DNA of 42,721 nucleotides. It comes from Ascoidea asiatica JCM 7603. Lineage: Eukaryota > Fungi > Ascomycota. The position numbers were made by a program, and so were the translations under genes. Each line of letters starts with the position of its first letter. Position 1 is the stretch's first letter. The stretch is taken from contig BCKQ01000023.1 of NCBI GenBank assembly GCA_001600695.1, forward strand, positions 123,417 to 166,137. The letters are read 5' to 3'. Below are positions 16,625 to 41,838 of this stretch, one piece after another. The notes under the pieces were generated by a model. That model searched no databases. It was not told the origin of the DNA and worked only from the letters and a program-made list of their open reading frames with translations.

Positions 16625-16813
16625 ATGACTCAATCTAATAGAAAAAGAGTACCAATGCGTTATGCTTTTGGATGTTGTAAATGTGGTAAAGTTGAAAGTG
16701 GTAGTACAACTTGTAGCAGATGTGGTAATTTAAAATGTAGAAGATGTAAAATTTTTGAAATTGAAAGTAGATTACCTGCAATTGATGGTTTTAAGTGGGT
16801 TAAAGATGAATAA
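16625..16813 (+). CDS. Small Cys-rich putative zinc-binding microprotein, family member 1 (62 aa)
   Basis: FGCCKC-x9-CSRC-GNLK-CRRC; aaaaATG context; host-like codon usage (TGT, AGA, GGT); same Cys spacing as three other ORFs in the window. Confidence 0.75.
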   Translation: MTQSNRKRVPMRYAFGCCKCGKVESGSTTCSRCGNLKCRRCKIFEIESRLPAIDGFKWVKDE

Positions 16814-18563
16814 TCGTTTCTCTTTTTTCAATCTAATATTATTTTAATTCTATTTCACATTATATTATATTACATTTATGTTTCATCATTCACTATAGAA
16901 ATATTATACTAAGATCTTTTTCTAAACTATCTAAATCATTGAATATAATTTCATTGTTTTTATATATACTTTATTACCTAATATATTATACTAAACCTTC
17001 TGTGACTACTTATAAGAACTTCTTAACTAATCTGATTATCTTGAAACAGAACATGAACTGAATTGCTTCTTCTTATTGATTCAATAATCTAATAATCCTT
17101 TATTTCAATTATCAATTGAAATTTTGTCATCAAATATCACAAAGAAGCTTTGTTTATTTTCTTACTTAAGCATCGGGACAGAGCCTCAACTGAGCAGCCA
17201 TGATTCATAAATACTCAGGACAATTGTCCCAATATGGAAATAAAAATAAAAAAAATAAAAACAAAAAATATGACACTGGATAGAATTGAACCGACAAAAA
17301 CCAGTCCGGATATCAGTTGTGACATTATCCGGTAGTTGAAAGTGCGATAAGAGCATACGCCACACGCATACGCACTGGCAAATATCTGAATCCTGGGCTG
17401 TTTGGATATGGGGTGCCGGTGAGTCAACGGAAACCTGGAAACCTGGAAACTGGAGCGTCTGGAGCTGCATAAGAGGATGGTCACACAGGGCTCTCTGAAG
17501 GGCCTCAAGAATTTCAAGAATTTCAAGAATCTCGAGTGCTCACTGTTCTTCTTCGCTCACCAAAGATTAGTAATATCAGTATTGAAACTAATGAAATCAC
17601 TCAGAGATATCACATCAGAATCTGGTATCAAAATCTGATGCCAATTCAGCCAGCTCAGCATGCTGGGCCCATGTGCTGTCTGAGGTCTTTCGGGACCCTG
17701 TCTGTCCCCTTTCTGAGCGTCTGCTGTCCCTGCGAACGGCTGGCTGCCACCTCTCCCCCACTCTGCCAAGCACCTAATTCCTGTTTCAGCTTCCATACTT
17801 AAGCAAAGCCACTCCATGGAACCTACACGGATTAGGAAACTAGCTCTTTTTCAAATCTGGAGAATATATTTCATGTTCTGTGTAAGGAAAAATGATATTG
17901 AAATATTTAATTTCAATGGAATTTATTTATAATATTCGTTCTATTTTCTTTATTATCTGTAATCTTAACTTAATTTCAAACTTCAATTCCAATATCAATT
18001 TCAATATGAATACTAAAATATTTTTTTTCTGAAGTTAGTTATTCTTGGAAATTTCTTTGTTGAAAAATAATAAACCGATTCAATCTAATGTTGATAATGG
18101 CTCATTATCAATAGATTCAAACAATTCACAAATCATCTCATAACTTTTTACAAATTAAAATTTCATTCAATTATTCTTATGAGTTACAAAAGGATAATTA
18201 AAAGATTATTATTATGTACTATTTAACTATTTGACTATTAAATTTTTTGGGTTATTGAAGTAATAGGCCATCACCGTATAATATAATAATAAAATTGATA
18301 AAAGTTATTATTCACTTTATCGGATATAGCTTTTATTCAAAAGTATGAGTATAATAATAATTGAATATTAATATAAAAAGATATAATTCGAACATGTTTG
18401 AAAAGCTTTTGTAATTTAATTCAATTTATCATTATATTTTAATTTTCATTATTATTTGATTCTTTTATGATTCATATTACATACATTATTATCATTAATT
18501 TTCATTATTATTAACAAATTTTAAGAAAAAAAAAAAAAAAAAACAATTATAATTTAAACAAAA

Positions 18564-19535
18564 ATGTCAAATTCAGAAATTAAATTAAATAAAAAAGATA
18601 ATTATAATTATAATCATGAATCAGATTCTGAAATTGAAGATCTGGAATCAAATGATAAAAATTATATTTATATTGGTAATACAAAAGTAAATAAAAATGA
18701 ATTATTAAAAACTTTATGTCTTGAAAAAAATTTATCTCATAATAAACAACCATTTCCAAATGAGTTAAAGAATTTAGATCAACTCAAAAAAAACTTACAA
18801 CTTTCTCAATCACAATCACAGTCTCATTCTCAAGACCAAGAACAAATTCAAACTCCTATTGATACTAATAACAATATTAACAATAACAATAACAAATGGC
18901 AATTTGGTGATCCAGCTCCATTGGGATTATGTTCTTTTGCCCTAACCACCTTTTTATTCTCCTTATGTAATGCAAGAGCTTTAGGATTAACTGAAGAAAG
19001 TATTGTAATTGGTCTTGCTTTTTTCTATGGTGGTTTCATTCAATTTGTTGCAGGTATTCTTTGTTTCATAGTCGGTGATGGTGTAGCTTGTAATACTTTT
19101 GCATCTTATGGAGGTTTTTGGATGGCTTGGGGTGTGATTCATACCGAGTCTTTTGGTGTTATTGATGCCTATGGTGGTTCTGATTCCAAAGATTTTTGTA
19201 ATGCCATGGGTTTCTTTAACTTAGTATTTGCCATATATACATTAATGATGGCATTGCTAGCTTTGAAAGAAGATATTTATTTCTGTACATTACTTTGGAT
19301 TGTTGTTGTAACATTTTCATTGAATGGAGCTTCTAAATTTGCTCAATCTCCTTCAACTGCAAGAGCTGGTGGTATATTTGGTATTATTGCCTCAATCTTA
19401 GCTTTATTCATTGCATATACCAAGCAAGCTAATAAAGATAATTCATACTGGAGACCTAAAGTTATTATGATGCCTCAAAGACATTCTACAGGAGATTTAG
19501 AATCAGGTAGTAAAGATGAAGAATCCTCAAACTAG
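18564..19535 (+). CDS. GPR1/FUN34/YaaH (ATO/ADY2) family acetate/ammonia transporter, copy B
   Basis: Same motifs as copy A, with a longer diverged N-terminus and a different C-terminal tail (GDLESGSKDEESSN). Confidence 0.93.
   Translation: MSNSEIKLNKKDNYNYNHESDSEIEDLESNDKNYIYIGNTKVNKNELLKTLCLEKNLSHNKQPFPNELKNLDQLKKNLQLSQSQSQSHSQDQEQIQTPIDTNNNINNNNNKWQFGDPAPLGLCSFALTTFLFSLCNARALGLTEESIVIGLAFFYGGFIQFVAGILCFIVGDGVACNTFASYGGFWMAWGVIHTESFGVIDAYGGSDSKDFCNAMGFFNLVFAIYTLMMALLALKEDIYFCTLLWIVVVTFSLNGASKFAQSPSTARAGGIFGIIASILALFIAYTKQANKDNSYWRPKVIMMPQRHSTGDLESGSKDEESSN
18828..19485 (+). repeat. Right arm of the ~660-bp inverted repeat (partner at ~12287-12944)
   Basis: Reverse complement of the copy-A core. 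Confidence 0.85.
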
Positions 19536-19840
19536 ATTTCTAATTGAAAACAAACTTTTTTACTTTATTCTAAATAAACTTATTCTTATTGAATTTATTA
19601 TATCTTTTATTAATATTTCTTTTTGCTTTTTTTTGGCTTTTCTTTTTAAATTTCTTTTTCCTTTTTTGACTTTAATCAACTGATAAATTTGTTTTTATTT
19701 CTTTATTGTACTCTATTATTCAATAAATTTTTTTATTCAAGTATTTTTAATAAAAAATTGTAGTCATATTCAAATGAATATTGAAGAATAAATAACATAA
19801 AAAAGTAAATGCATATAAATATAAAGAAAAATTAAAAAAA

Positions 19841-19958
19841 TGGCTGCAAAGAGGTTCGAACTCTTGCATCTCTCGATATCTGATTGCTCGCTTTTCTGTT
19901 AAGTGAAAGTTAACAAGTAACTTGAGTCAGACGCCTTAGACCACTCGGCCATACAGCC
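19841..19958 (-). tRNA. tRNA-Leu(CAA) with a 36-nt intron (~19885-19920)
   Basis: GGCTGTATGGCCGAGTGGTCTAAGGCGTCTGACTCAAG[intron]ATCAGATATCGAGAGATGCAAGAGTTCGAACCTCTTTGCAGCCA; the intron is at the canonical 37/38 position; T7 terminator. Confidence 0.95.
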
Positions 19959-20239
19959 TTTCTTTATTCAAAGACAAAGTGAAAGGCTACCAGAGAAATA
20001 GGTAAAATAATAGTAGTAAAATAATAGTCACGGGACTCATTTGGAACCAAAAATTGGGAACTTTTACATTTTTTGTGAGCTCGAGAAGAAATTACAAAGA
20101 TATTTATCTCTATTGACAAATGAGTTGAACTTTTATTACTTTTATTACTTTTATTACTTTCATTACGTTTATATAGCTTTTTACTTGAGGTTTGTATCTA
20201 GTTATAAATTACAAATTCTTATAAATTTATCCTCAATTC

Positions 20240-20380
20240 TTATGATTGATCCTGACGATAACACCAGCGACAAATATTATGAGTGCATTTCTGACACTTT
20301 TTGACATTTCTATTAGATTTAGCACATTTACAGCAAACCCATATACTTATACGAAAACTGATTAAGAAAAAGCAGGCCAT
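20240..20380 (-). CDS. Small Cys-rich putative zinc-binding microprotein, family member 2 (46 aa from ATG 20380)
   Basis: MACFFLISFRISIWVCCKC-AKSNRNVKK-CQKC-THNI-CRWC-YRQDQS, the C-terminal part of track ORF 20240..20509 (whose start is TTG). Exact family motif; the start context (ttgATG) is weaker than in the other members. Confidence 0.65.
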   Translation of the reverse strand: MACFFLISFRISIWVCCKCAKSNRNVKKCQKCTHNICRWCYRQDQS

Positions 20381-20766
20381 CAACTTTTTATTTCTATAGT
20401 TTTTATTATGTATTTTATTTCCTTTATCTTCTAAAATATAAATTGTTTTGGTTTTTTTTTTATAAAATGAAGAGGAAACTAGAAGTGTAATTCTCAGAAT
20501 ATCGTCCAAAGTTATCAGTTTTTATAGAGACTTTCATTGTGCTTGATGATTAATTTTGAAAGTAAATAGCTATTTCGTGGCCTCCAATAATTTGTACTTT
20601 TTTCTTAAAGATTTAAATTCACACACAAAGGAGAATACAAAGTGTTATAAATATAGAATCTGGATTTGGATCTGAAATTGAAAATAATTAAAAATAAACA
20701 TAAAATTGAAATGGTATTAAAAATATAAAAAAAAAAAAAGGAAATGAAGAAAATAAAGAAGTATTC

Positions 20767-20790
20767 TGCTATTTCTGTGGATCGAACACA

Positions 20791-20823
<33 letters not shown>

Positions 20824-20839
20824 GCTGAGCTAAAACAGC
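20767..20839 (-). tRNA. tRNA-Phe(GAA), intronless
   Basis: GCTGTTTTAGCTCAGCTGGGAGAGCGTCAGACTGAAGATCTGAAGGTCCTGTGTTCGATCCACAGAAATAGCA, 73 nt. Confidence 0.96.
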
Positions 20840-21001
20840 AAGAATATAAAAAGTTAAATTTTAATCTGGTCCTAGACATAAAAGTAAGTTATTTTTAATT
20901 TTCCTTATTCGATAGTATATCACCTGACTTAGCATCATAAAACCCTTTTAAAACAAATAGTTTCAATTATTGATACTCGGATACTTCAAGAACCAAATAA
21001 T

Positions 21002-21061
21002 AGATAATAAATAAGATAATAAATAAGATAATAAATAAGATAATAAATAAGATAATAAATA
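21002..21061. repeat. Tandem repeat (AGATAATAAATA)x5
   Basis: Five 12-bp copies. Confidence 0.9.
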
Positions 21062-21661
21062 AAATAGGTAATAAATAATGATCAGATAATAAACAACAGT
21101 TTTTTTTACTCGTATTTCACATAACCACATCACTCAAAGCAGGTTTGATTAATTGAAGCCTCTTGAAATCCATTCAAATACATTCCAATTCATTCAATTT
21201 CACTTATTTTCATGTAAATCAAGAAATTTAACTTATTTTTTATACAAACTTAAGGATTTTATTTAACTTGATTTTATTATTATGAAACAAATTTGAAATT
21301 AATTTGAAATTAATTTGAAATTGATTTAAATTATGTTTATTACCATAGTAATAGATTTAAATAAATATGTATTTCGTTTATTCGTTATTTATTCATAACC
21401 ATAAATTTACCACAAAACCAGATATTAAAATGTAATTTATCTATAATATTATTTTTTCTTTAATAAAAGTTTTTAATCAAGTTTTGAATTGAATACTTTT
21501 TTATAATTTCCATAATTTTTTTTTGTTATAAATATTTAAAATATTCCTTGATAATCATATTACTATATTTCTGTATTACTTTATTACTATATTATTATAC
21601 TACTATATTAATATATTTTCATTAATAATAAAAAAAGTAAATAAGAAGTTTAAAATTAAAA

Positions 21662-21922
21662 ATGGGTTTTTTAGATTCAATTCAAGATAAAGCAGAAAGT
21701 GAAATGCAAAAAAGAGTACAAAATAAAATTATTGATGGTTTTGAAGATCAAATTCAATCAAAATATGGTATTGATATAGATTTCAATAATAATGATAAAA
21801 AAGATTCTTCTTCTTCTTCAAATAATAATAACAATAATAATAACAATAACAGCAACAATAGTAACTCAAAAGATAGTTCTAATGGAGATCTATTAAATAA
21901 TCTTGCAAGTAAATTCTTCTAA
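21662..21922 (+). CDS. Small hypothetical protein (86 aa), partial paralog of the adjacent prion-like protein
   Basis: aaaATG start; shares the motif MQ..V/Q.KI(I/V)DG(F/I)E.QI..K(Y/F)G...D(F/L)N and an LAS.F motif with 22287..23144. Confidence 0.75.
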   Translation: MGFLDSIQDKAESEMQKRVQNKIIDGFEDQIQSKYGIDIDFNNNDKKDSSSSSNNNNNNNNNNSNNSNSKDSSNGDLLNNLASKFF

Positions 21923-22286
21923 TAAATTAGTTAGTTTAAATATTAAATAAATAGTATTATTGTTAATAAATATTTCATTTTCTATTTCAGTTTGTATGTA
22001 TTTAAGCCATTACTTTCACATGGAGCAGCAGTGCGAGAGTTTGCGAGTACCGTACTAAAATTGTATATGGATAATTTCATTTGAAAACTCGTTATTTTGC
22101 ATAATAAAAATCCGTTAACATTTCTGATTTACTATTTTATAATTATTATTATTATTTGATTATTTGATTATTCATTTACTTTATTATTTGATTATTCTAT
22201 TCATATTTATATAAATATACAATTACTATTACATATACAAGTACAAGTTAAAATTACAGATCATAGATTAACCCTCACTACTAAAG

Positions 22287-23144
22287 ATGTCTTCAAATAA
22301 TAATAATTATAATTATAATAACAACCAAGGAAATAATAATGGAACTACAGATAGAGGATTATTAGATAATTTAAGTACTTTAAATAAATTAAATCAACAA
22401 TTTAATGGTAAAGGTAATGGTAATTCTAATTCTAATTATAATTCAAATTCTAATGGTAATAAATCATCTTCAATGCAAGATAAAATTGTTGATGGAATTG
22501 AACAACAAATTTCTAAAAAATTTGGATTTAATGTTGATTTAAATGGTAATCAAAGTAATCAAAATAGCCACGGTAATAGTGGTAATAATGGTAATAATGG
22601 TAATAGTGGTAGTAATGGAGGTTTTGGTAAATTAGCAAGTTCTTTACTTGGTGGTGGTTCAAATCATAGTAACAATAGTAATAATAATAATAATAATAAT
22701 GGTAATAATAATAACAATAATTATGGAAATAGTAATGGTAATGGTAGTAGTGATACATTTGGTAAATTAGCTAGTTCATTATTAGGATCTGGTAAAAATT
22801 CAAATCAAAATCAATCTGGATCTGGTTCAGGTTCAGGTTCATCAGCTCTTGGTGGTGGATTAATTGGAGGATTAGCAAGTTCTTTTCTAGGTGGATCAAG
22901 TTCAAAACATTCCAATAATAATCAAAATGACTATAATAACAATAGTAATAATAATAATAATAATAATCATAATAACAACCAAGGATATAATCAAAATAAC
23001 TATGGTAATAACCAAGGTAGTTATGGAAATGGTAATCCAAGTGATTATGGTAGTTATGGTAATGGTAATCAAGGTAGTTATGGTAATGGTAATCAAGGTG
23101 GTTATGGTAATGGAAATGGTGGTCAAGGAGGAAATAGATGGTAA
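22287..23144 (+). CDS. N/G/S/Q-rich prion-like protein with Rnq1-like architecture
   Basis: 285 aa; three (F/I)G(K/G)LASS(L/F)LG hydrophobic repeats in an Asn/Gly/Ser background; C-terminal GNQG(S/G)YGN oligopeptide repeats; ends NRW. Confidence 0.8.
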   Translation: MSSNNNNYNYNNNQGNNNGTTDRGLLDNLSTLNKLNQQFNGKGNGNSNSNYNSNSNGNKSSSMQDKIVDGIEQQISKKFGFNVDLNGNQSNQNSHGNSGNNGNNGNSGSNGGFGKLASSLLGGGSNHSNNSNNNNNNNGNNNNNNYGNSNGNGSSDTFGKLASSLLGSGKNSNQNQSGSGSGSGSSALGGGLIGGLASSFLGGSSSKHSNNNQNDYNNNSNNNNNNNHNNNQGYNQNNYGNNQGSYGNGNPSDYGSYGNGNQGSYGNGNQGGYGNGNGGQGGNRW

Positions 23145-23436
23145 TTAGAAACGTTGATAAATTGATCATTTGACCACTGATAGTTTTTTTATTTTTTTTC
23201 TTTCTTTTATTCTTACATTTCCATATATTTTTCATATTTTGTCACTTATTCTTAATACCTAACAAACTTTATGAACACTAAAAGCATCAAAAGCATCAAA
23301 AGCATCAAAAACATCTCAGACAGATGAAACACAGGAAACAAAAGAAAAAAAAGAACCAAAGCGAAATACGCAAATTCACACTCGCAAACGCCGGGGAAGA
23401 TGAAATTCGATGCCCATCGCATCCTTACAACTGGTA

Positions 23437-23475
23437 AACTCCAGTGCAGTGGATCTGCACCACTGCACTGGAGTT
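23437..23475. repeat. Perfect 16-bp inverted repeat with a 7-nt loop
   Basis: AACTCCAGTGCAGTGG-atctgca-CCACTGCACTGGAGTT. Confidence 0.9.
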
Positions 23476-23524
23476 AAAAAAATAAAAATAAAATAAAAGA
23501 CCCATTGATATGGAGTCAAAAACC

Positions 23525-23775
23525 CACGTGAACGTTGTCGGAAACATAGTCCGAGGTAAACATAAACACGTGCTACATTTCTGCATGTGACAGCTGTTTG
23601 GAATTCCGGCAACAGTGACTCACCCAGCTGCTGCCTCCGCCTGCCTCCGCCTCTCTTTTAAATGACCTCGGATCTTCCCGCTGGCTTTTTCAAACAAAAT
23701 ACATCCGACTACTACTGAAGGTGGTCGTAACTTTAATTAATTACCATAATAATACAATCCGATTATACGCACGTG
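23525..23775. promoter_or_regulatory. STR3 upstream cluster: Cbf1-type E-boxes and a Gcn4/AP-1 site
   Basis: CACGTG at 23525, 23567 and 23770; CATGTGAC (= GTCACATG, RTCACRTG) at 23584-23591; TGACTCA at 23616-23622. Typical of sulfur amino-acid gene promoters. Confidence 0.6.
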
Positions 23776-24219
23776 TCTTTTACTAGCTGCCAAAAAAACT
23801 TTAAATTTTTGAAAATATTCTGAAATGTCAAAGAATTCGATCGCCAAATTATTACTCATAAACTCAGTGTAAAAAGTTGTTTGAGTGATAAATATCAAAT
23901 TTCAGTATAAATAAAAATTAGCTTCTTTCTTCTTCTTCTTCTTCTTCTTCTTTTTTTTCAAATATATTTCTTTTAATTTAATTCATTCTTATTTTGCTTC
24001 ATATAAGATTAAAATACTTTATAAAGCTAATTTATTTTATTAATATTTTGATAAAGACCAGTTATTACTCTTTATTAAAATTTTTATTTTAATTATCTTC
24101 TCAACAAGTTAATTTCCTTTTCTTTTCTTTTCATTTCATTTCCTATCTCCTTCTATTTCTCTTTCATTTCCCCTTTTTTCTCCATATTTTATTTGTTTTT
24201 TAAATAATTCATTCAGAAA

Positions 24220-25674
24220 ATGTCTTCAGATTCAGATTCAAATTCAAAATCTTTGTATAAATTTGATACAGAATTATTAAGATTAAATCATAATGATCAA
24301 AATTATTCTTCAGTTCCACCTTTATATCAATCAACAACTTTTAAACAAATTATAAATGGTAATAATACTTATGATTATACAAGATCTGGTAATCCAACAA
24401 GATCAATTTTAGAAAATCATTTATCTAAATTATCAAATTCAAAAAAAACTTTTGTAGTTTCAAGTGGTATGACTTGTTTAGATATAATTTTAAAATTATT
24501 ACCAAAAGATTCAATTGTATTTTCAGGTTTAGATCTTTATGGTGGTTCAAATAGATTATTAAATTATTATTCAAAAGATTTATCTCTTTTAAAATTATTT
24601 CAAATTGATACTTCTAATTTTAATGAAATTGAAAAAATTTTTAATGAAAAATTATTAAAATTTAATAATAAATCTAAAATTTCAATGATTATTTTAGAAA
24701 GTCCAACAAATCCATTAATGAAAATTATTGATTTAAAAAAAATTGTTAAATTTATTAAATTAAATTATCCAAATTGTATTATTGTTTTTGATAATACTAT
24801 GATGTCTCCATTATTTTTTAAACCTTTAAATTTTGGCATTGATATTCATTATGAATCTGCAACTAAATATCTTAATGGTCATCATGATATTATGGCAGGA
24901 ATGATATCTGTAAATAATTTAAATTTATCAAATAAAATTTATTTTATTATTAATTCAATTGGTTCTGGTTTAACTCCTTTTGATTCTTGGCTTTTAATTA
25001 GAGGTTTAAAAACTTTAAATATTAGATTAATTAAACAACAATCAAATGCTTTAATTTTATCTAATTTTTTAAATTTAATTCCATTTTTAAATAATAATGT
25101 TTATTATCCAGGTTTAAAAACAAAACAAAATTTAAAAAATTATAATTTACATAGATCTTTTAATAATGGTTATGGTTGTGTATTATCTTTTAAAACAAAT
25201 TCAATTTTAAAAAGTGAAAAAATTTTAAAAAAAATTAAATTATTTTCAATCACTGTTTCTTTTGGTTCATGTAATTCATTAATTTCATTACCTTGTAAAA
25301 TGTCTCATGCTTCAATTGATCCAAAAATTAGAAAAAAAAGAAATTTACCAGAAGATTTAATTAGAATTTCAACTGGTATTGAAAATCCTTTAGATTTAAT
25401 TAATGATTTATCTCAAGCTTTAATTTATTCTGGTATTAATATTCCAAAAAATTTAATTAATTATTTTAATGAAAAATTATCAACCAAATATCAAAATAAT
25501 GATTTTAATAATCAAATTAATAATGATTCTTTAAATGATTTAATATTTAATCAAAATAATAATAACATCAATAATAATAATAATAATAATAATAATAATC
25601 AAGATATTATTAATGATCAAGATAATTTAACTAATTATAATTCTGTTAATCAATTATTAATTCCAAAATTATAA
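24220..25674 (+). CDS. STR3: Cystathionine beta-lyase (PLP-dependent, Cys/Met metabolism family)
   Basis: SSVPPLYQSTTFKQ, YDYTRSGNPTR, DLYGG, LESPTNP, FDNTMMSP, YESATKYLNGHHDIMAG (PLP lysine), SFGSCNSLISLPCKMSHASI; C-terminal -PKL. Confidence 0.93.
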   Translation: MSSDSDSNSKSLYKFDTELLRLNHNDQNYSSVPPLYQSTTFKQIINGNNTYDYTRSGNPTRSILENHLSKLSNSKKTFVVSSGMTCLDIILKLLPKDSIVFSGLDLYGGSNRLLNYYSKDLSLLKLFQIDTSNFNEIEKIFNEKLLKFNNKSKISMIILESPTNPLMKIIDLKKIVKFIKLNYPNCIIVFDNTMMSPLFFKPLNFGIDIHYESATKYLNGHHDIMAGMISVNNLNLSNKIYFIINSIGSGLTPFDSWLLIRGLKTLNIRLIKQQSNALILSNFLNLIPFLNNNVYYPGLKTKQNLKNYNLHRSFNNGYGCVLSFKTNSILKSEKILKKIKLFSITVSFGSCNSLISLPCKMSHASIDPKIRKKRNLPEDLIRISTGIENPLDLINDLSQALIYSGINIPKNLINYFNEKLSTKYQNNDFNNQINNDSLNDLIFNQNNNNINNNNNNNNNNQDIINDQDNLTNYNSVNQLLIPKL

Positions 25675-25754
25675 ATTAATCAATTTTCATAAATTTTTTC
25701 CTCCCTTCTTTTACTGACTGTCTTTAACTTTTAATTTCTTCTATTTTCAATTCA

Positions 25755-26514
25755 ACTATCCAACTAGTTTTTTCATCATCCTTTTTTTTTATTATTTAAA
25801 TTAATAATTAACTTAAACATTCAATTACTATCCAACTAGTTCAATTGTCAATGTTTAAAAAATCTTCTTCAATATTTCTTGTTTTCAAATTAATTCAATA
25901 TTAATCAATCATAATTAATATATCTCAAACTATTGATTAGTTTACAGATATATATATATATACAGTATATGTATTATGATTATGAATTTTGAAAACATTA
26001 ATATGATAACTATCCAACTAGTTTTTTTACAATCAATGGTTTTTAATTGACTAAAATTAATTTACTATCCAACCAGTAACTGTTAATTTAGTCAAGAAAT
26101 ATATTCAGTGAATCTTTTAACATTGACTAAATATATTTCTATATCTTTCTTATTTTATATTTTATATTTTAACTCCCATCCAAAGACAGACAGTCAATCT
26201 CATCATCTTACTTACTATTTATTTATTTATATTTTAATTATCTCATTGCTTTTTTTGCATTGCATAGTCTATCCAACTAGACTCTTTATACCTCCTCACT
26301 CATGTTAAATTGTTATATTACACTATTTTTTCTCATATTTATGTTTTTTTTAATTAATTAATTCTCTTGGTTTTTTTTACTCTCTTTTTCTTTCTCTTTC
26401 TCTTTCTCTTTGTTTATTTTTTTCTCTTTATTATTATTTATGTTAATTATCATGCTATGTGTATCGGGTTTTAAAAATTTTGTTTCAATGAATTATAAAT
26501 GACTATCCAACTAG
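25755..26514 (+). repeat. Six dispersed direct copies of (A)CTATCCAACTAG
   Basis: Copies at 25755, 25827, 26009, 26064 (ACTATCCAACCAG), 26268 (TCTATCCAACTAG) and 26502, all in the same orientation. Confidence 0.85.
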
Positions 26515-27304
26515 TTCATTTTATAACATTTCTTTTTTTCAATTATTCTATTCTTAATAAATACAATGGAATCTCAATTGATTTCATTCTTCTTATTACT
26601 ACTTTTATTGTTATCTTCTCTCTGTAAATGACTGAAAGAGTTTCAATTATCATTTTCCTTGTCGAATTCAAAAACAGCAGATTTTGGTGAATTTGGTGAA
26701 CATTGCGGATTTTTATTAGTAAAACGAGATCCGCGATCCGGGTTTCCTCGTTTCCGTATTTGGAAATAAAAACAACTGAAACAAAAAGAAACAAAAGCAA
26801 AAGTCTTTGATTGTCAATGATAAGCAATTGGCTTTAGTAAGATAATTAATACCTCTAAAGAATTGCGTAGATATTAAATACGTAAATTATTTTCCCAATT
26901 TTTTTTGAAAAAAATATTTATTAAGGATTAAAACTACATTTTATATTATCTTTAGCACTTTCATTTCGCCAATTTTTAGTTAAACTTGATAAAAATCGAT
27001 AAAAATCTGATTCAAAGATTGATAGATTAAAATGAAAATATAAACAAAAGTACCACCAATTTATGAATGATGAAATTAGGCGACGGATATTAGACTTTAT
27101 TAAGTAAAAAGGAACAGATAAAAAAAAAGAAAATCAAAATTGAAGAAAAAAAAAAAAATAAGGAAAATGAAACAAGAAAACAAAAAATTAATCAATGGAT
27201 CAACAGAGGAGGTAAAATGTTTTTTTTATGAAGAATAAAGTAAAGTAAAATAAAATAGTGGAAAATATAATTTTATAGGTAGCATCTTGATTATTTTAAA
27301 GAAA

Positions 27305-29367
27305 CTATTCTTGTCCAAAACCAACAGTTTCTTCAACTGCTAAACTTAATTTTTTCGCTAAACTTTCTGCATCTGCATAAGGTGGTAAATCAACTCTATT
27401 GAAACATGTATGAGATTTTGGTAATTGATTTGATTCACCAGCTTTTTCAATTGTGAATCTTCTTGGACCATCTGAACCTTGTAAATCTTTAAATCCATTA
27501 ACAGGTATTCTTGAAGTACCTGTTGTAAATTGTAATAATCTTGCTCTTTGTTCATTATCCCATTCTTTTATTGTTTTCCAGAACCATTGTATAACTTCAT
27601 CACTTTCTTGATATCCTCTATAATCTGTATGTTTTTTCCAATCTTCAACATCAATTTCTGAAATACCACCAATTAATAATTCTAATTCTCTTTCATCAAA
27701 TACATTAACTAAATCTGCAGGAATTAATTCATTAAAACCATCAACAAATGCTTTGAATTGTTCTTCAACTCTTTTATAAATTTTAAATTCAGTTAATAAT
27801 TCAACATATTCTTTTTTATTATCTTCTGTAACATCAATATTATCACCATCTGGTTTTAATTCAATTGTTGTAACTTGACCAAATCTTTCATCTTCAATTG
27901 AGAATGTGAAACCTAAATCTGCTACATCATTTTCTACAATCCATTTTAAAGAATTATAATATTCTGCATCAACACCTTCCATATCTTGTAATACAACTTT
28001 TCTTCTTAACATCATTTTATATAAAGCTCCAATAAAAAAAGCATCTAAAAATCTTCTATGAAATACACATAAACCAACAACTCTACCAATAAATTTAAAA
28101 TAATTTAAATGTTCTGGATTTATTGAAGAATGTGGATTAATTTGTAAAGTATAATTATCATGAGCAGAATATTCAAATAAACCATAGGATGGATTAAACA
28201 TTTCATGAGATAATAAAAAGAAAAATTCTCTTGAAACTCCACCATAATCTAAACCTTCTTCACCATCGAATTTAATCATTAATCTTTTCTTTAAATCTTC
28301 TGAAGTTTGTCTCATAATTTCTTGATATGAATCTTCAAAAATATTTGATCTTTTAACTTTTATATGACATTGACCAGGTATAATTCTTAAAGCAGGTTGA
28401 GATCTAAAATATATAACTTTTCTTCTAAAATCTCTTTTATATTGAGGTACATTTTGATCTAAAGAAGAAGGTAATCTTGGATCATCCCAAGTTGTAGTTT
28501 TTGTATTATGATCAACAAAATAAACTCTTGCAGTATTTGTTAATCTCATTTCCCAACCACTTGGTAATGGACCTAATTGAGATACAGGTTGTTGTTGAAC
28601 AGTATTTGAATTAGTTGTACCATAAGATCTTATATATTGTTGTCTTCTTGGATCAACCCAAGTTGTAGTTCTTGTATTATGATCAACAAAATATGGTCTA
28701 CCATCAGGAGTTTCTCTTTGTTCCCAACCTGGTGGTAAATCACCTAAACCTGGAGTTGTACTTGAATTTGAAGCCATTGATAAAGCAGCAAATCCTGATG
28801 TTAAAGGAGTCATATTATTTGAATTTCTTACAACAGCTATATCTCCACTATCAGTATTATTTGGTTTTGGAGTTGGATGATTTGAAGTTTGAGCAGTAGT
28901 TGAAGTTATAGCAGTTGTTGAAGAAGATTGTCCAGGTAAAGTTCTACCTCTATGTTGTCTTCTTTCTTGTTCCATTACGCTTAATCTTTGTTGATTTCTT
29001 TCTTGTTCAGTTTGATTTAATTTTGGTCTTTGCCAAGTTGTTGTTTTACTATTATGATCTACATAATATGGTCTACCGAAATTATCAGTTTTTCTTTCCC
29101 AACCTGGAGGTAATTTTCCATATTGATCTTCAAATGATGATACAGGTCTTGGAGATATTGGAGATAGTATATCATTTGTATTTGAATTTGTATTTGTATT
29201 TGTATTTGAAGTTGTGGAAGAAGAAACTGTAGGAGGTATATTAATCGATAAATTATTATTATTATTATTATTATTAGGTATAGAAGTATTAGGGGTATAT
29301 GAATTTGAATTATTTATAGTTGAAGTTGTATTGGCGGTTAAATTATTACTTATATTACTGTTTGCAC

Positions 29368-29404
<37 letters not shown>

Positions 29405-29845
29405 GGAGATATTTTGAGTTGATTGATGATTTGAATGAGATAATTCAATGATTAATTTACCAGAAACATAAACATTATCATTTGATTTTTTTAAATCTTT
29501 TGTAATTGTTTCTATACATTTATCTAAATTTAAATCAATTATATCATTAATTTTTAAATTTATAACACCTAAAAATCCTTGATCTTTCTTTTTAAATTTT
29601 TTTTGATCAAAAATTTGTATAGTTAAAATTGAATTTTCATTAATATTTGAGAAACTAAAAGATTCATTCCAATATGGATTTAAAGTCTTTTTAGCAACAG
29701 AAGTTGTTTTAGTTTGAGTTCCATCAATTGTTAAAACAGCAAATGGATCTGGAGTTTTAAATACATCTCTTTTATATAAAGATTCAGCAGCAACTATTTT
29801 TACTGAAATTGTTGAATTTATTGCAGATGGACGATTGGAATACAT
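27305..29845 (-). CDS. RSP5: NEDD4-family HECT E3 ubiquitin ligase (C2-3xWW-HECT)
   Basis: C2 domain ([26 protein letters not shown]), three WW domains (LPPGWE...YYVDHN..TTTW), HECT ending [16 protein letters not shown]...EETVGFGQE. Confidence 0.98.
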
Positions 29846-31272
29846 TTTTTATATAATTTATTGATGATAAATATTATGAATATTATTATTAGTGAATATA
29901 ATAAATACTAAAAGGCTGCCGACAAAATAAAAAAAAAAGGAATTAAGAAGAATCTGAGAGAAACCAATGAGTAATAATATGATAGTGTGATAATGTAATA
30001 ATGACAATAATGACAATGCAAATAAATGAGTTATATTAATTATATTATTTTATCAGATTTAAAAAAATAGAATATTTTTAATATTTTTTTGGGATTGAAA
30101 ATTTATTGAATTGATATGTGATGAATTATTGAATCACAGTCAGTGAAAAAAGAGAATTAAAACCCGAATCAAAAAACTGAAATTGAAAGTGATACTGAAA
30201 CTAGGCAAAAGCAGCAGAGGAATCAGATTAATCAGAAAAAGAATCAGAAGAAACAGGAGAAACAGAAGAATAGAAAGAAACAGAAGAAAAAATGCAAATC
30301 TGAGAGGTTTGTATAGATTTGTATTTTTACTGTTGTTGATTGATATGAAGCTTAGCCTTGAACAGATCTTGTGTCGTTTTTTAGGTGATAACAATGCAAA
30401 ACTACTGTTCTTTTTGATGTTCTTTTTGATATTCTAAAGATTAGTTTAATGTTAATTTACTTACTCACTGACCACCGACTGCTAACGCTGTTTGTTTGTT
30501 TGTTTGTTAGCCCAGCTCAAGAATGGACTCCATGCTGGACTTGGACCACCTGCAAATGCCATTCCCCTTAATCGCCACACCTTAGCAAATGCTCCGTGCT
30601 TGTCCTTTGCAATCCGCACCGAAATCTCATGGTCGAATCTGTCACTCATCCAGTATGAAACAAACGCTTGCTTGATTTTCTACCGGTTGTTCCATAAAGG
30701 GTATTTTATCTTATATTTTTTAATTTTGTATCTGTATTTCCGACCAGATTAGCCCCCGGAGGCTTAGTGGAGACCCGAAATTCAGAAGTTCCCGAAACTG
30801 TGACTAAATGACCCGCAATATTATTTCCATCTGACTGTGGCTTGTGCATGTCGGAAATCCGGTTCTTCCATGCCCACCACGCCTGTTTTTTGTATCCGGT
30901 GTCGCACTGAGTTTGTTCATGCGCAGTACTGCATGTCTCACGTCTTTTCCGTCCAAATCCGTTGTTTTCTTCTTTTTTCTTCTTTTACAGCTGTTTTTGC
31001 TGGTTTTGTAATTGAGACCTCTTTTGTGGATGTGTTTTATTTAGATTAAGATCTTTTGCTTTTATTATTAATATATACAGAATATACTCTCTCTCATATG
31101 AATTGATTATACTTTACTAGATATTTCAGTAAAAATTCATGAAAAAAAAAAAATTAGATTGAATTCAAATATGACTGATTGATTAACCGATTAATAAGCT
31201 AATTGGAATTCAGGAATTGGGAAGTAAAATAATATTTGATTGTTTTGAAAATAAATTAACTACAAAATATAA

Positions 31273-32718
31273 TTACCAACCGAAAAGTAACCATCCTATT
31301 ATAGCTGATCCCATTCCAATTAAAACATATTTTTCTTTCTTTGCATCTTTATCTTTAATTTTTTGATTTTCTTCAATTGAATTAACGTTTTTAATTTCTT
31401 TGATATTAGTGTCTAATTCTAATTCCTTGATTATTTCTTTTTTCTCTTCTTCTATGATTTCCTCTTTAGACAATTCTTCTTTTATTTCTTTATTTAATCC
31501 TTCATTCAATTTACTATCAACATTATCAGCTTTGAATACAATATTCTCATCTATATTTTTAACTTCATTATCTTCAATTTTTTCCATATTCAAATTATTT
31601 CTCTCGCTTTCCTCATTTTTTTTTTCCATTATATCATATTCTTTAAGTAAATTATCTAAATCATCTTTACTAAATCTTGGAAATTCTTTTTCTTTATTAT
31701 CTTTGAATGTTGGTAAAACATGTTTATCAAATACGTAATTTTTTTTATAAATATTATTTTCAGCCGGATTAACATTTTTAAATTCTGCTTCTTTTTGTTT
31801 TTGTATTTGTTTTTGCTTTTCTTCTTCTTTTAATTTATTACTTTCAAATTCTTTGATTATTTTATCTAAATCTTCTTTTGAAAATTTTAAAAATTCTCCT
31901 TTTGGTAAAATATGTTTATCAAATACATAATTCTTTTCATAAATATCATTTTTAGCAGGGTTAACTTCTTTAAACTGAAGTTCTTTTTCTTTTTCTTTTT
32001 CTTTTTCTCTATCATTTTCATATTCTTTAATTAATTTATCTAAATCTTTTTCCGAATATTTTGAAAATTCTCTATTTGGTAAAGCATGTTTATCAAATAC
32101 AAAATTTTCTCTATAAATATCATTTTTAGCAGGATTAACTTCTTTAAATTCAGGTATATTTTTTCCAATTAATTCATTTTCTTTAATCATTTCATCAATT
32201 TCTTTTTTAGAAAATTTCACAAATTCTTTATGTTTTTCATCTTTATTATTAAATTTTGGTAATTTATGAAAATCAAAAATATAATTTTTTTTATAAATAT
32301 TATTTCTAGCAGGATTTACTTCTTTGAATTCACTTTCTTTACTTTCATTTATTTTTTCATAAATTAATGGTTTAAAAACTTCATTATTATAATATTCATT
32401 TTTACTAGGATTAACATCCTTAAAATTGTTTAATTCTTTCTTAATGCCAGTCTTATTATTATTATTACTATTATGATTATTATGAAATTTAATTGAAACT
32501 CCTTGATTATTTTGACTATGATTAGCACTGATATTTTTATTTACAACATGGGAATCAATAGAATTGTGAGAATTGTGAGAATTAATATTTGCTTTTTCTT
32601 GGTTTAAAAAACGATTTAATCTTGAAATCAAAAGCTTTTTTTTACCAGTTGGATCTAAACCTTTTTTTTTGCATTCTTCTTTAAGAAGTTTTACTGTCAT
32701 TGTCTGATATGATATCAT
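31273..32718 (-). CDS. SAP-domain protein with five internal repeats and a C-terminal membrane anchor (loosely Aim34-like architecture)
   Basis: N-terminal MTVKLLKEECKKKGLDPTGKKKLLISRL matches the SAP motif; FK(E/D/N)VNP..N.IY..N(Y/F).FD.H.LP..EF.K(F/Y)SK.D.D..IKE repeats; C-terminal YVLIGMGSAIIGWLLFGW TM segment. Confidence 0.8.
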   Translation of the reverse strand: MISYQTMTVKLLKEECKKKGLDPTGKKKLLISRLNRFLNQEKANINSHNSHNSIDSHVVNKNISANHSQNNQGVSIKFHNNHNSNNNNKTGIKKELNNFKDVNPSKNEYYNNEVFKPLIYEKINESKESEFKEVNPARNNIYKKNYIFDFHKLPKFNNKDEKHKEFVKFSKKEIDEMIKENELIGKNIPEFKEVNPAKNDIYRENFVFDKHALPNREFSKYSEKDLDKLIKEYENDREKEKEKEKELQFKEVNPAKNDIYEKNYVFDKHILPKGEFLKFSKEDLDKIIKEFESNKLKEEEKQKQIQKQKEAEFKNVNPAENNIYKKNYVFDKHVLPTFKDNKEKEFPRFSKDDLDNLLKEYDIMEKKNEESERNNLNMEKIEDNEVKNIDENIVFKADNVDSKLNEGLNKEIKEELSKEEIIEEEKKEIIKELELDTNIKEIKNVNSIEENQKIKDKDAKKEKYVLIGMGSAIIGWLLFGW

Positions 32719-34013
32719 TTCTCAATTTCAATTTCACTTTTAATTTTAATTTTATTTTCAAATTCAATGTATTCAATTTCCAATTTCTAATTTCTAATTT
32801 TTCTCCCTTTAAATATTTACTCTATATTCTCTAGAGTAAAAATAAGAATATAACAATATTAATTTTTGAAACCAGCTAATTATGCTTATACAATACTACT
32901 TCTATAAGTGAGGTCTGATTTCTTTTCTTTTACTGCTTCTTAATTAAGCATAATTGCATTATTATAAATTATATTAATTGAATTGTTATTTTTTATTGCA
33001 TTAAAATCCGTTGGATGAATCTGTTAGTAAAACTTTTTCCCGGTTCCCGCACGCTGATTGGCCAGTTTTTGGAACAAATGACTTCATGCTGAAAAATCAG
33101 TATCAAAATGGAAATAAACAAAAGAATTTACTTCTCTTGAATCTGTAAAAAACAATCCAGGTTATAATTGAATTGAAATGAATTGAATTGAAATGAAATG
33201 AATTGAAATGAAGTGTTTGATGTCTTATAAAAAGTGTAGTTTAGTACCTTGAAAGAGAGCCAGGAAAGCTTTTTGAAATGAGGTACATGGAGCAAAACTT
33301 CCCATATCGAATAGATAGATTAGAATTTTTATATTTCATTTTCTCATATTCTTATATTTATTCTGCTTATCGGGGAAAGTGCTATTAATCAGTTTATGAA
33401 ACAAAAGCTGACCAGGTAATATAAGATTGTAAGATGAAAGTGTCTCTTTTTTTTTTGATTGAAACAATAGTAGTTCAGTAAATCTCATTAAAGGTTATTA
33501 CAGTACTGATTATTACTCAGATAATGAATATTGTATAATGAGTTTATTAATTTATTTATATTTTAAGGATATATGACTTCATTCCTTACAAAATTAATGA
33601 TTTTATTTTTTACTACTTAGATCAAGTTGTTCAAATGTCTTAATTTATCAAAGGTATTTTAATATTCAAAGAGAATAATCATAATGATTGTATGAATTGA
33701 TGAATTGACGATAAGAGAAGCTTAATCAAAAAGGTTCTTGAAATGAAGGATTGAAATCTTAAATTTACTTTTACAATTAATTTTTCTTATAAATTATATA
33801 AATATAACTAAAACTATCTATAATTCAATCGATCTTTAACCTTTTTTATCAAAAAAAAAAAGAAAGAAGAATTATAAGTAGAAAAACACAATAACAATAA
33901 CAATAATAATAATAATAATAATAATAATAATTTACTTATTTCAATTGTCAAAACAGTTCAAATAAGAGAGAAAAAAAAACCTGTTCAAATAAAACCAAAA
34001 TTGTTTTAAAAAA

Positions 34014-34235
34014 ATGAGTTTTACAAGAGAAGATTCCCCAGAACAAGTATATGAAGAAGAAACAGTTCGTAGAGGTGCAATTCCAATTGATTTTACTCCA
34101 GCTCCTGGTCAATATTGGAGATGTTGCCAATGTTATGCTGAAACAGTTTCTGTTCTTCCTTGTGATCATTGCCCTCATAAAAAATGTTTTCATTGTCAAG
34201 TTTATTTAGATCCTTCAAGAAATAAAAGATATTAA
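34014..34235 (+). CDS. Small Cys-rich putative zinc-binding microprotein, family member 3 (73 aa)
   Basis: YWRCCQC-YAETVSVLP-CDHC-PHKK-CFHC; aaaaaaATG context; host-like codons. Confidence 0.75.
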   Translation: MSFTREDSPEQVYEEETVRRGAIPIDFTPAPGQYWRCCQCYAETVSVLPCDHCPHKKCFHCQVYLDPSRNKRY

Positions 34236-37200
34236 TTGAATCTGAGAATTATCAGCTTATTGTTTATATTTCTTTTTAAACAATTATTTCATTTTAATTC
34301 TTATTCTTACAATTTTTCAAAAATATTTCTAGTAAATTTTTTTATAATCTTTTTTTTGTTTTTTTTTCTCAAATAATATTTATATTAACCGTTTTTTAGT
34401 CATTAAGTTCATTATAATATTTAATATAAGTCTTGTAGATATTAATTTCATTAATTTGATATTAGTTTGTGTCTAAATAAAATCCTTATTTCAAAAATTG
34501 ATAGATTTTTACTAGATACATATGTAACAGACATATTATACTACAGTATATATAAAATTGAAGATTCCAAATATCAAATATATTCCTTAAAAAAAATGTG
34601 AAGCAAAGGATTTAAAAAGTAAAACAAAATTAGTTGAAGATAATTAGTTAAATTAGATTAATTTGATTGGAGAACCCTTCAAAATTATTATTTTAAGAAA
34701 TTAATCTATTTGTTTGAACTTTATGTTCTTGTTTAAAAAAAAAAGAAATCATAACTAACCATTTCCTTGACTTTCTTTTTTTTTTTTTTTATCTCCACTG
34801 TAGATAAAAAAAAAATAAAGTAAAATTGTACAAATTTGAGAATTATTTAATATATCTTATTTTGGATAAAAGGCATTTTTTTTAAAAAAGATTAGTTAAT
34901 TTAAATTAATAAAATATTGAAACAAACAGCGAAGTAATCAATTCATTTTTAATTACTTCTTAAGTATATTACAACGATTATACTTAAAAAAAAATAAAAA
35001 CATAATTTTGAATAATATTGACACACAGTAACTTTTAAGAAAAGGATTCGAGTCAAAAATCTAAGATTTAATAAAATATCGTTTCAAAACGTTCTTTTAA
35101 TATTAAAATATAGATTATTCTTGATAATGCAAAAAGTAGCTTGGTAATGTGAATTGTCGCTATTACGCCAGCGATTCGCAGTTTTGTAAGAAAGTGAAAA
35201 AAAAAAAAAAAAAAAGGATAATGAACAGCGAATTTTTCATGAAAATCAGAAGGAAATTTAAAAAGCGATTTGAAAAGCAATTTGTAAGAGAACTTGAAAT
35301 GAAATTTGGCCTTATTCTCTTAATAAATCTCATTTAAGTATCAAATAATAATATTCATAACAGATAGCATTGTAGAATACAGAGAATTATAACCTGAAAT
35401 ACAGAAATGCAACTACATTCGTCTTTTCTATAGTTAAAATCCAAACCAGCTTTTTTTTAAGTTAAACTGTAGTTCCTGCAGCTTGATCCATTTTGATCTG
35501 AAATGATAATTGATTTTACTCTCGGACCTGTACCAATACTGGCTTTTAATTTGGCTTTTGAATTGGCTTTTGATTTATTTCTCAAATGGAATTTGAAATG
35601 ATGTAAAATTGATTTCTATAACAAAGCATCATTCCCCAAAGTTCATCCGAGTAATTTGGAACTTCAATTCAGGCATCTCCAAGATATGATTGCTTTCCTA
35701 TCATCATTTAAATATAAATTCCCTATAATTTTTATAATATTTAATAGCAATTGCAATTGAAAGCATAGAAAAGAGAGCAAATGCTGTTAGATTCATTGGA
35801 ATTCATTTAACGTTATTTGCTTATTTATTTATTTATTTATTTATTTATTTTCTGTTTGTGTTTGCTTCTTTCCGGATAAGCACCGGATGGCACCGGCTAC
35901 AACCAAAACAACCAAAACAACCAAAACAATCAAAACAATCAAAACAATCTGCATTTGATCGAGTTGATAGAAAAGTAATCATTTTCATCATCATCATCAC
36001 TATCATTGTCCTCCTTTATCACTATCATTATTTTCTTCATCATCATCATAATCAATGGGAAGATGAGCTGGAAAACAGACTGAAAAGGAGCAGGAATCAA
36101 TCAATGCAATTACAAAATAGTCCAAAACCGCTTTCTTCAATAATCTTCTTCCAAAAAGGTTTATTCCTTCTCGGGGGCTATACAATTCAGTCATTATCAG
36201 AAATCTCCAGAGAAATTTATTATTAAACTTTAGCGATGCTCAGGGAAATCATAAAAAATATATTAAAAATTATTTAATTTCAGGTACTTGCTTATCAAAT
36301 TTAATCCAACTAGGTCATGGATCAAAATATTGGAATGTTATTAATTCAATTTGAATTATTTTAAAACAATTAATTAACTATCTTCATTTAAAAAGTATTT
36401 CTTTCAATTCAATTAATACTCAATTATTATATTCAATTATTATATTCAATAATCAATAGAATAAAAAAAGTCAATTTCTATTTATCCATACTTAAAATCT
36501 TAGAAATTTTTATAGTATAAAATATAAAATATAAAATATAAAATATAAAATATAAAAGAAAAAAAAACCTTATTTATTAGAAAGTAATGAATTTAAAATA
36601 ATTTAATTTTTACATCATTATACATCTTCAAGATTTGTATCACACAACTATTAAATACTGTATATTCTTAGTTTCAAATTTAATATTAAATATTACTTAA
36701 ATTATTCCAAAAAAAAACATTTTACAAAAAATTCAATATAAAAACAGATTCTGCTTTTCAAATTTTAAAGATATTATTGTCTTATTTATTTACTCTTTTC
36801 ATTATAAATATCAGAGTTATAAATTAAGTAATTAATTTTCCAATAAATATATTCAAATAATTAACTTATCTAATAATCAATAATCTTTATCTTCTTACTT
36901 AATTGTATTCTGAGTCGGTTGTTTTAATATTAATATTTTATTTATTTTTTTTTAATCTACTGTATTCTTTTCAAAAAAAAAAAAGTCATTCATTATAATC
37001 ATACATATTTTATAATTAAAATAAATTAGAAAAAAAAATATATATTTAATTAAATTTATTCCCTTTTAAAAAAAAAAGTATAAATCAGATTCAATTTATC
37101 CTTTCTTTACTTTTCTTTTCTTTTCTTTTTATTCTCAGTAATCAAAAGAAAAATTAATTCAAAAATTACTGACTTCAATCATCTCAATTACAATCTCAAT

Positions 37201-37255
37201 AATATTATATTTATATTTATATATATTTCTATTTCTATTTCTATTTATTTAAAAA

Positions 37256-37408
37256 ATGGGTCTTAATCTTATCAATTGGACATGTTGTTTTTGTGGTAAA
37301 TATCCAAATCCAGGTGGTATTAGAAATTGTTGTAGATGTAATCATCAAAATTGTACTAATTGTGCTTTAGTTATGGTTGATCAAAGTAAAAGAAAAAAGA
37401 GTAAATGA
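37256..37408 (+). CDS. Small Cys-rich putative zinc-binding microprotein, family member 4 (50 aa; below the ORF-track cutoff)
   Basis: Manual translation: MGLNLINWTCCFCGKYPNPGGIRNCCRCNHQNCTNCALVMVDQSKRKKSK*; aaaaaATG context; a GC-elevated island in an extremely AT-rich region; basic C-terminal tail. Confidence 0.75.
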   Translation: MGLNLINWTCCFCGKYPNPGGIRNCCRCNHQNCTNCALVMVDQSKRKKSK

Positions 37409-38281
37409 ATTATTTCAAAATTTCATTTTCTAAAACTTTTTTTTATCTACATTATTATTATTATTCTTATCAGTATTATATAGTATTATACTAAATTATA
37501 TTATATTATATTATATTATATTATATTATATGACTCATTTTTTCAAATTTCATTTTCATTTATTTTACTTATAATTAGTTTACATTTTTTATTTCAATTA
37601 ATGCACTTTACTTTTTTAAAAAAACATTATCAAAGATTATCAATGTGTAAATTAAATTTAATTTTAACTAAATACTATAGCAACAGTAATAGTAATTTCA
37701 AAAATAGTTCATTGTTTTGGAAACAAAATTCCTAAAAACGTTTGAATTAGTTCAATGATTGCATATTAAATTCATCCCTACAATATTTATTAAATTGTCC
37801 CTGTTGTTACTTCTAGTCTTAGATTAATTCAATTTAGATATTATTTATTTAGAGTCAATACAAAAAATAAAATCCCAAATATAAAGTTGAAATTGATTTT
37901 CAATTGAAAACTAAAAATTCATGGCTGATTTTGAAACATTCAAATCTTTTTTCAAAATAATATGGTTTCTAATTAAAAATTCATTCAAACAAACCAATTG
38001 TGAGTTGATGATTTAAAGTCATATAAAATTCATAAAACTTTTTATTTAGTTAGAAATTTTCTGTTCTTTTGCATAAAATGAAAAAAAGCATCATAACGAA
38101 AATTCCACAGAGTGAAAAACATTTAAATACGATTAAACCAAATATTCTCGAAGAAGTCAGCCCAATTATTCACAATTTTTCAAAACCAATGAAGCAGATG
38201 AACGAATAAAAAAAAAAAAAAAAAAGGTTTAAAAAAACTTTTTTTAGTCAGAAAACACAAATTTGGTCAAAATAAAAAAGA

Positions 38282-38362
38282 CGACAACAGCAGGACTCGA
38301 ACCTGCGCGGGTAAACCCAAAAGATTTCTAATCTTTCGCCTTAACCACTCGGCCATGTTGCC
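38282..38362 (-). tRNA. tRNA-Ser(AGA), identical to the copy at 15011-15091
   Basis: Same 81-nt sequence; T-run terminator downstream. Confidence 0.97.
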
Positions 38363-41789: not shown

Positions 41790-41805
41790 GCTGATTTAGC
41801 TCAGC

Positions 41806-41838
<33 letters not shown>

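Follow-up and report, generated by a model that had tools for sequence, protein, structure and literature searches.

The window analysed here is a 42,721-nt stretch of contig BCKQ01000023.1 from the yeast Ascoidea asiatica JCM 7603, with a G+C content of 24.6%. It contains four short open reading frames (ORFs), named below after the position at which each begins, whose products share the pattern [WF]-x-CC-x-C-x9/11-C-x2-C-x-[HN]-x2-C-x2-C (Table 1). A first-pass annotation made from the letters of the sequence had described a dispersed family of Cys/His microproteins at these sites, and we found all four ORFs at exactly the coordinates it had given.

Four short ORFs and their coding signal

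Seven Cys residues are invariant across the four ORFs, with an overall identity of only 25–34% when aligned, and Cys and His together account for approximately 25% of the core residues. The loop is 9 residues long in three copies and 11 in 37256, and only 20380(-) has Asn at its fourth position. The 34014 ORF shows the canonical W/CC/H form of the motif behind an acidic N-terminal segment of 34 residues, and the 37256 ORF combines the 11-residue loop with a basic C-terminal tail. The 16625 ORF is the most divergent copy, with Phe replacing Trp and Asn replacing the His ligand. In 20380(-), all eight ligand positions are intact and the stop-free frame extends to 20521. No CTG codon occurs in any of the four ORFs, and their translation is therefore independent of which yeast code applies.

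A six-frame translation of the window was scanned with the slightly wider expression [WF]-x-CC-x-C-x8-12-C-x2-C-x-[HN]-x2-C-x2-C, which matched four times, against 0 matches in 200 dinucleotide-preserving shuffles; the looser C-x2-C-x4-C-x2-C also matched four times, against a shuffle mean of 0.015. The scaffold is thus above chance, as had been proposed, and the shuffles together with the reciprocal profile searches described below rule out chance ORFs. We also rejected the idea that the copies are exons of one larger gene, since they lie 3–14 kb apart, one of them on the opposite strand, and every copy has its own ATG and stop codon. A hidden Markov model (HMM) scan of all stop-to-stop segments of at least 20 aa detected no further copy, intact or degenerate, in the window.

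Coding signal was scored as the log-likelihood ratio of codon frequencies from ten large window ORFs (4328 training codons) against intergenic trinucleotides. In their own frames 16625, 34014 and 37256 scored +26.8, +32.3 and +22.6 bits, respectively, with negative scores in each of the remaining five frames, and they occupy ranks 2–4 by coding score among 44 intergenic ATG ORFs of 40–110 aa. Their values on a scale like that of the codon adaptation index are 0.786, 0.785 and 0.789, compared with 0.63–0.91 for the ten large window genes, and all three have A at position -3 of the ATG, in agreement with the start contexts noted earlier for three of the copies. The top coding score among the intergenic small ORFs (0.565 bits per codon) belongs to an 86-aa ORF at 21662–21922 (+), which sits just upstream of an Asn/Gly-rich ORF of 285 aa at 22287–23144 and is probably a real small gene.

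The 20380(-) copy is atypical. Its codon score is -20.4 bits and its value on the adaptation scale 0.382; it uses CAG, TGC, GTC and also CGC, a codon with 0 occurrences among the 4328 training codons; its N-terminus is hydrophobic, and T is found at -3 of its ATG. It is located between an intron-containing tRNA-Leu(CAA) gene at 19841–19958 and a tRNA-Phe gene at 20766–20840. The earlier proposal of four genes consequently stands with confidence for 16625, 34014 and 37256, on the evidence of codon usage and A at -3, and is doubtful for 20380(-), which may not work as a gene and could be inactive or under a different regulation. Expression of the genes is presumed. A signal peptide is absent in three of the four ORFs and the proteins are mostly basic; secreted Cys-rich peptides were rejected on the grounds of the hydrophilic N-termini of three of the four.

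Table 1. The four microprotein ORFs, database relatives named in the text and G+C-rich islands of the window
Feature	Position (nt)	Strand	Description
ORF 1 (16625)	16625-16813	+	62 aa; domain core 16667-16747
ORF 2 (20380(-))	20380-20240	-	46 aa counted from first ATG; domain core 20341-20261
ORF 3 (34014)	34014-34235	+	73 aa; domain core 34116-34196
ORF 4 (37256)	37256-37408	+	50 aa; domain core 37277-37363
Relative OCK74892.1			Lepidopterella palustris; unnamed repeat protein of Pezizomycotina
Relative KAF1981942.1			Aulographum hederae; unnamed repeat protein of Pezizomycotina
Relative KAK5165507.1			Saxophila tyrrhenica; unnamed repeat protein of Pezizomycotina
G+C-rich islands	6931-7580, 13861-14380, 17261-17890, 23301-23780, 30431-31020		480-650 bp each

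Relatives in filamentous fungi and similarity to zinc ribbons

A profile built from the four ORFs only was compared with 1.84 billion representative proteins and gave 26 matches at E<=1e-3, the best at 1.3e-10, with single-domain matches down to 5e-5. The matched proteins carry W-x-CC-x-C...C-x2-C-x-H-x2-C-x2-C with equal spacing, mostly as 2–5 repeats per protein, and Gly-His precedes their last two Cys. The named matches are hypothetical proteins of Dothideomycetes (Lepidopterella, Saxophila and Aulographum), and one relative is labelled 'RanBP2-type domain-containing protein' in UniProt. No other domain was found fused to the motif domain in the relatives, and the genes neighbouring theirs gave no functional hint. 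Word-index protein searches with the four ORFs and with a 52-sequence alignment of the domain returned no match.

In the reverse test, an HMM derived from the outside copies only was run against 1143 stop-to-stop segments (>=20 aa) of the window. The four ORFs were recovered at E values of 7.9e-11 (34014), 3.5e-10 (37256), 8e-10 (20380(-)) and 1.2e-8 (16625), and the next segment followed at 0.12, a gap of approximately seven orders of magnitude. Because the reverse HMM picks only the four ORFs, the family is represented in the window by these four members alone, with no decayed additional copy. These profile matches in both directions place the four ORFs in an unnamed family of Pezizomycotina repeat proteins. 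The expectation that similar uncharacterized proteins would exist in other fungi was therefore borne out by the forward search, and the diverged family of small Cys/His metal-binding proteins put forward in the first-pass annotation is real, except that its members elsewhere are mostly multi-repeat proteins of 116–663 aa rather than microproteins. The single-domain microprotein form, in several copies, appears to be particular to this yeast.

One further protein, P0021 (42 aa), matches the motif perfectly and is encoded on a 2.8-kb contig of JGI metagenome 3300042731. The contig carries twelve small same-strand genes, partly overlapping, in a phage- or virus-like layout, a context hinting at movement of the module beyond fungi as well.

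None of the four ORFs had a Pfam match even at E<=10, PF00641 (the RanBP2-type finger) included, and among the relatives the only PF00641 signal came from one repeat of protein P0014 (E 0.0097; 15.6 bits, where the cut-off is 27). Neither the Pfam library searched nor the precomputed Pfam tables contain a family that spans the domain, consistent with the earlier impression that no known domain spans the whole pattern. When the 52-sequence profile was compared with all Protein Data Bank (PDB) sequences, it matched Nup153 (4.9e-4), RBM10 (1.2e-3), RBM5 (4.4e-3) and both Npl4 and TRABID (0.01), with further matches up to 0.02 to the zinc fingers of MDM2 and RanBP2. All of the PDB matches were limited to the W-x-C-x2-C...C-x2-C part, within profile positions 2–30 and, for the fingers named here, 4–27, and the canonical 10-residue RanBP2 loop with Asn is frequent in the Pezizomycotina relatives. 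Over its first two thirds the domain is similar, at the level of profiles, to RanBP2/NZF zinc ribbons, a similarity already noted from the motif and now seen at PDB E values of 5e-4 to 0.02. The FYVE/IBR/RING half-sites that had been considered alongside it are supported by no match.

An AlphaFold2 model of residues 24–73 of 34014, computed from the 52-sequence alignment, reached a predicted local distance difference test (pLDDT) score of 80, with 84–92 in the core, and in this model the strand before the Trp pairs with the strand after the last Cys. A model built from the four sequences alone was discarded (pLDDT 55). Foldseek comparison of the retained model with the PDB gave no match at E<=0.001, the values lying above 1. 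VIA-align matched it at Z 2–3.5 to zinc ribbons (eS27, NZF and RanBP2 fingers, MCM and Rpb12), the exceptions being a few larger proteins with a zinc-binding module. The weak structural matches span model residues 7–37, and weak scores are expected because the domain is only ~37 residues long. The structural comparison, suggested in the first-pass annotation, is used here for consistency only. Searched by shape, the ESM Atlas returned an Ascomycota cluster of hypothetical proteins (template modelling (TM) score 0.62), placed above PF26652; searched by language-model features, it returned Ascomycota clusters of 54–115 aa without Pfam assignment (0.89–0.90).

A putative second metal site and a possible function of the module

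Ligand statistics were drawn from 101 aligned domain instances, comprising the matches and the window copies and including plain RanBP2-like repeats caught by the profile. Wherever the C-terminal C-x2-C is present (73 instances), a possible ligand occupies the second 'CC' position: C in 58, H in 11, D in 2 and E in 2. All 21 instances with P, S, T, K or R at this position are without the tail (Fisher p = 5e-16 for the co-occurrence of extra ligand and tail, which is not a true probability because the sequences are related). An aromatic residue (Trp, Phe or Tyr) is found in 98 of the 101 instances, His in 77 of the 83 in which its position is occupied, and the spacing is fixed. Within the window, the ligand states are CHCC in three ORFs and CNCC in 16625.

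The co-occurrence suggests that the extra Cys and the H-x2-C-x2-C tail form a second zinc site, and the eight ligand positions would fit two metal sites, as had been anticipated from the motif. We propose that one zinc would be bound in the manner of RanBP2 fingers, by Cys 1, 3, 4 and 5, and the other by the second Cys of the 'CC' pair together with the appended H-x2-C-x2-C. The result would be a compact two-metal module with its N- and C-terminal strands paired. In 16625 the second site may be weakened by the presence of Asn for His and Phe for Trp.

Taken together, it is probable that the four ORFs are stand-alone genes (doubtfully so for 20380(-)), each encoding a single domain of ~35 residues that derives from the RanBP2/NZF ribbon, binds two zincs and serves as a small intracellular binding module. 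The proteins would act inside the cell as zinc-stabilized modules for the binding of protein or nucleic acid, with partners that would differ between paralogs. We base the intracellular binding role on the lack of a signal peptide in three of the four, the mostly basic character of the proteins, and conservation that is confined to the ligands, the Trp and the Gly-His. The same domain constitutes the unnamed Pezizomycotina family missed by Pfam, there usually in 2–5 repeats and with no other domain.

A number of observations weigh against this reading. All structural Z scores are below 4 and the Foldseek E values above 1, so that the zinc-ribbon assignment is drawn mainly from sequence. The co-occurrence statistic counts related sequences and repeats that are not independent, and the assignment of ligands to sites follows from co-occurrence and not from geometry, with a cross-braced arrangement as the alternative; in 16625 the His ligand is replaced by Asn. 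The codon usage of 20380(-) resembles that of no gene in the window. The four ORFs and two large window proteins alike were blank in exact look-ups of the protein collection, and the closest Rsp5, which sits on contigs of under 4 kb, is 58% identical in its N-terminal part, too distant for synteny or dN/dS. In the subclasses of RanBP2-type fingers, ubiquitin binding goes with Thr-Phe, Ran binding with Leu-Val, and RNA binding with Asn-Phe and Arg-Arg. Following their second ribbon Cys, 16625 and 37256 have G-K, 20380(-) has A-K and 34014 has Y-A; the Ran-, ubiquitin- and RNA-binding signatures are absent from all four ORFs, and no partner can therefore be named.

The main rival explanation, which we consider unlikely, is a metallothionein-like metal buffer or reservoir, in which the binding and release of Zn (or Cu or Cd) is itself the function and copy number sets the capacity. 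The share of Cys and His in the core, the restriction of conservation among paralogs to ligand positions, the presence of several copies in one window, and the repetition of the domain elsewhere in fungi with no other domain attached would all agree with such a role. However, the rigid spacing and the conserved Trp and Gly-His suit a folded structural zinc ribbon. A Zap1-type zinc-responsive element was found near no copy (the sole one-mismatch match in the window, at 11581, is at chance level), no upstream motif common to the copies was detected, and no k-mers are common to the upstream or the downstream flanks of the four. Metallothioneins are recognized by Cys clusters with no fixed fold, no aromatic residue and no His, features that do not describe these ORFs, and fungal metallothioneins are not known to have aromatic residues or a fixed ribbon spacing.

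The copies could also be non-functional relics, remnants of a larger repeat gene or of a mobile sequence that are open by chance, and for 20380(-) this would agree with the rare codons, the poor start context, the odd N-terminus and the position between two tRNA genes. For the set as a whole we regard it as very improbable: decay in DNA of 25% GC would soon bring stop codons, yet the ligand positions are intact in all four despite 25–34% identity elsewhere, and three copies end in proper stops, have A at -3 and show gene-like codons in no frame but the right one. Least likely is a role as NZF-type ubiquitin-binding adaptors or modulators of the ubiquitin system, an idea raised in the first-pass annotation and in keeping with the profile matches to the NZF fingers of Npl4, TRABID and TAB. 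Ubiquitin binding by NZF fingers needs Thr-Phe after the second ribbon Cys and a later hydrophobic residue, and this signature is missing in all four copies, which have G-K, A-K, Y-A and G-K where Thr-Phe is required; moreover, Ran- and RNA-binding fingers match the profile equally well. The idea was therefore not upheld, and the binding-module reading remains the one we prefer. Beyond it, we advance only tentatively the possibility that the domain is an undescribed two-zinc elaboration of the RanBP2 ribbon with the ligand order C-C-C-C-C-H-C-C, widespread in Ascomycota yet missing from Pfam, which in this very AT-rich yeast would have shrunk to stand-alone microproteins and multiplied through the genome, its products being either fast-diversifying binders or a zinc store.

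Genomic setting and comparison with known families

The large ORFs of the window are ordinary budding-yeast genes, encoding ATE1, a Myb factor, PSF3, two ATO/ADY2 transporters, a Cys/Met pyridoxal phosphate (PLP) enzyme, RSP5 and a SAP-domain protein. In its N-terminal part, Rsp5 is only 49–58% identical to those Saccharomycotina Rsp5 proteins that align over their full length. Because of this low identity, and because window proteins are absent from the protein collection, the lineage appears to be without a close sequenced relative in the collections.

The stretch at 32719–40984 is 8 kb without a large ORF, unusually sparse for a yeast; its sole coding-like ATG ORFs of at least 40 aa are 34014 and 37256, and it also contains a tRNA-Ser gene at 38280–38363. 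A tRNA gene is found within 1.6 kb of three of the four copies, a linkage that was not counted, as its chance is estimated at ~0.15 with five tRNA genes in 42.7 kb. The intron-containing tRNA gene at 19841–19958 (-) was detected by Rfam at 46.9 bits and missed by ARAGORN, and its anticodon loop was read by eye as CAA (Leu). A tRNA-Ser(AGA) sequence occurs twice (15003–15095 and 38274–38366), as does tRNA-Phe(GAA) (20718–20841 and 41788–41911), the latter with ~50 nt of flank at 80% identity.

Five islands (Table 1) have 42–47% GC, with peaks of 51–60%, against a background of ~20% GC. Each is positioned ~0.4–1.3 kb upstream of a large gene, namely ATE1, both ATO copies, the Cys/Met PLP enzyme gene and RSP5, and 0 of the 5 lie directly upstream of a microprotein gene; none has an Rfam match. 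The two ATO/ADY2 (GPR1/FUN34) genes, at 12268–12966 and 18806–19504, are inverted copies that are 99% identical over 699 nt and have diverged N-terminal parts, an identity that suggests gene conversion. The 5.8 kb between them contains the 16625 microprotein gene, a tRNA-Ser gene and two of the GC islands. Between the PLP-enzyme gene and RSP5, at 25755–26545, there are three copies of a 44-nt unit starting ACTATCCAACTAGTT (direct-repeat family D17).

The analysis defines a compact and easily recognized zinc-finger domain that current family libraries miss, and connects unannotated yeast microproteins with hundreds of 'hypothetical' residues in filamentous fungi. Provided that the second metal site is real, one inserted Cys and a seven-residue tail turn a one-zinc ribbon into a two-zinc module. 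A profile of the domain would recover yeast genes that fall below the usual ORF cut-off, and several apparent gene deserts of this genome may hold such genes. The value at present lies mainly in annotation and domain cataloguing.

Among known systems, the nearest named cluster in the ESM Atlas is Pfam PF26652, Zn_ribbon_double (features 0.80; TM 0.57 over model residues 8–50), which we treat as a lead only. The family is described as 'Probable double zinc ribbon domain-containing protein', from Ascomycota, and a literature search found no description of either the motif or PF26652. Five relatives (P0001, P0014, P0020, P0023 and P0029) have no PF26652 in the precomputed Pfam tables, which include higher-numbered families; the comparison with PF26652 drew on these tables and on the cluster labels of the Atlas. 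Fungal metallothioneins such as Cup1, Crs5 and the Neurospora metallothionein are likewise small, Cys-rich and multi-copy, whereas in the domain here the ribbon spacing is fixed, Trp and His are conserved and the predicted fold is a beta-hairpin.

The domain resembles the RanBP2-type finger (PF00641, Zn_ribbon_RanBP; PROSITE W-x-C-x(2,4)-C-x3-N-x6-C-x2-C) of proteins such as Nup153, RanBP2, RBM5/10, ZRANB2 and MDM2, in which W-x-C-x2-C and C-x2-C enclose a loop of ~10 residues, frequently with Asn as its fourth residue. The domain differs from it in the extra Cys inside the first knuckle and the appended x-H-x2-C-x2-C; the yeast copies, in addition, have loops of 9 or 11 residues rather than 10, and 16625 has Phe for Trp. 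NZF fingers share the same ribbon scaffold, and those of Npl4, TRABID, TAB2 and Vps36 are among the profile or structure matches, but they bind one zinc and the domain here has eight ligand positions. The fold class is known and the relatives are already in databases as hypothetical proteins, and it is the full eight-ligand domain that is without a Pfam model in the library searched and in the precomputed tables. In the repeat proteins of Pezizomycotina, annotated only as hypothetical and with no Pfam match on record, the full motif is identical to that of the four ORFs, including the Gly-His and the final C-x2-C. They differ in architecture: the filamentous fungi carry mostly 2–5 domains in proteins of 116–663 aa, and the ORFs of this yeast encode a single domain in 46–73 aa.

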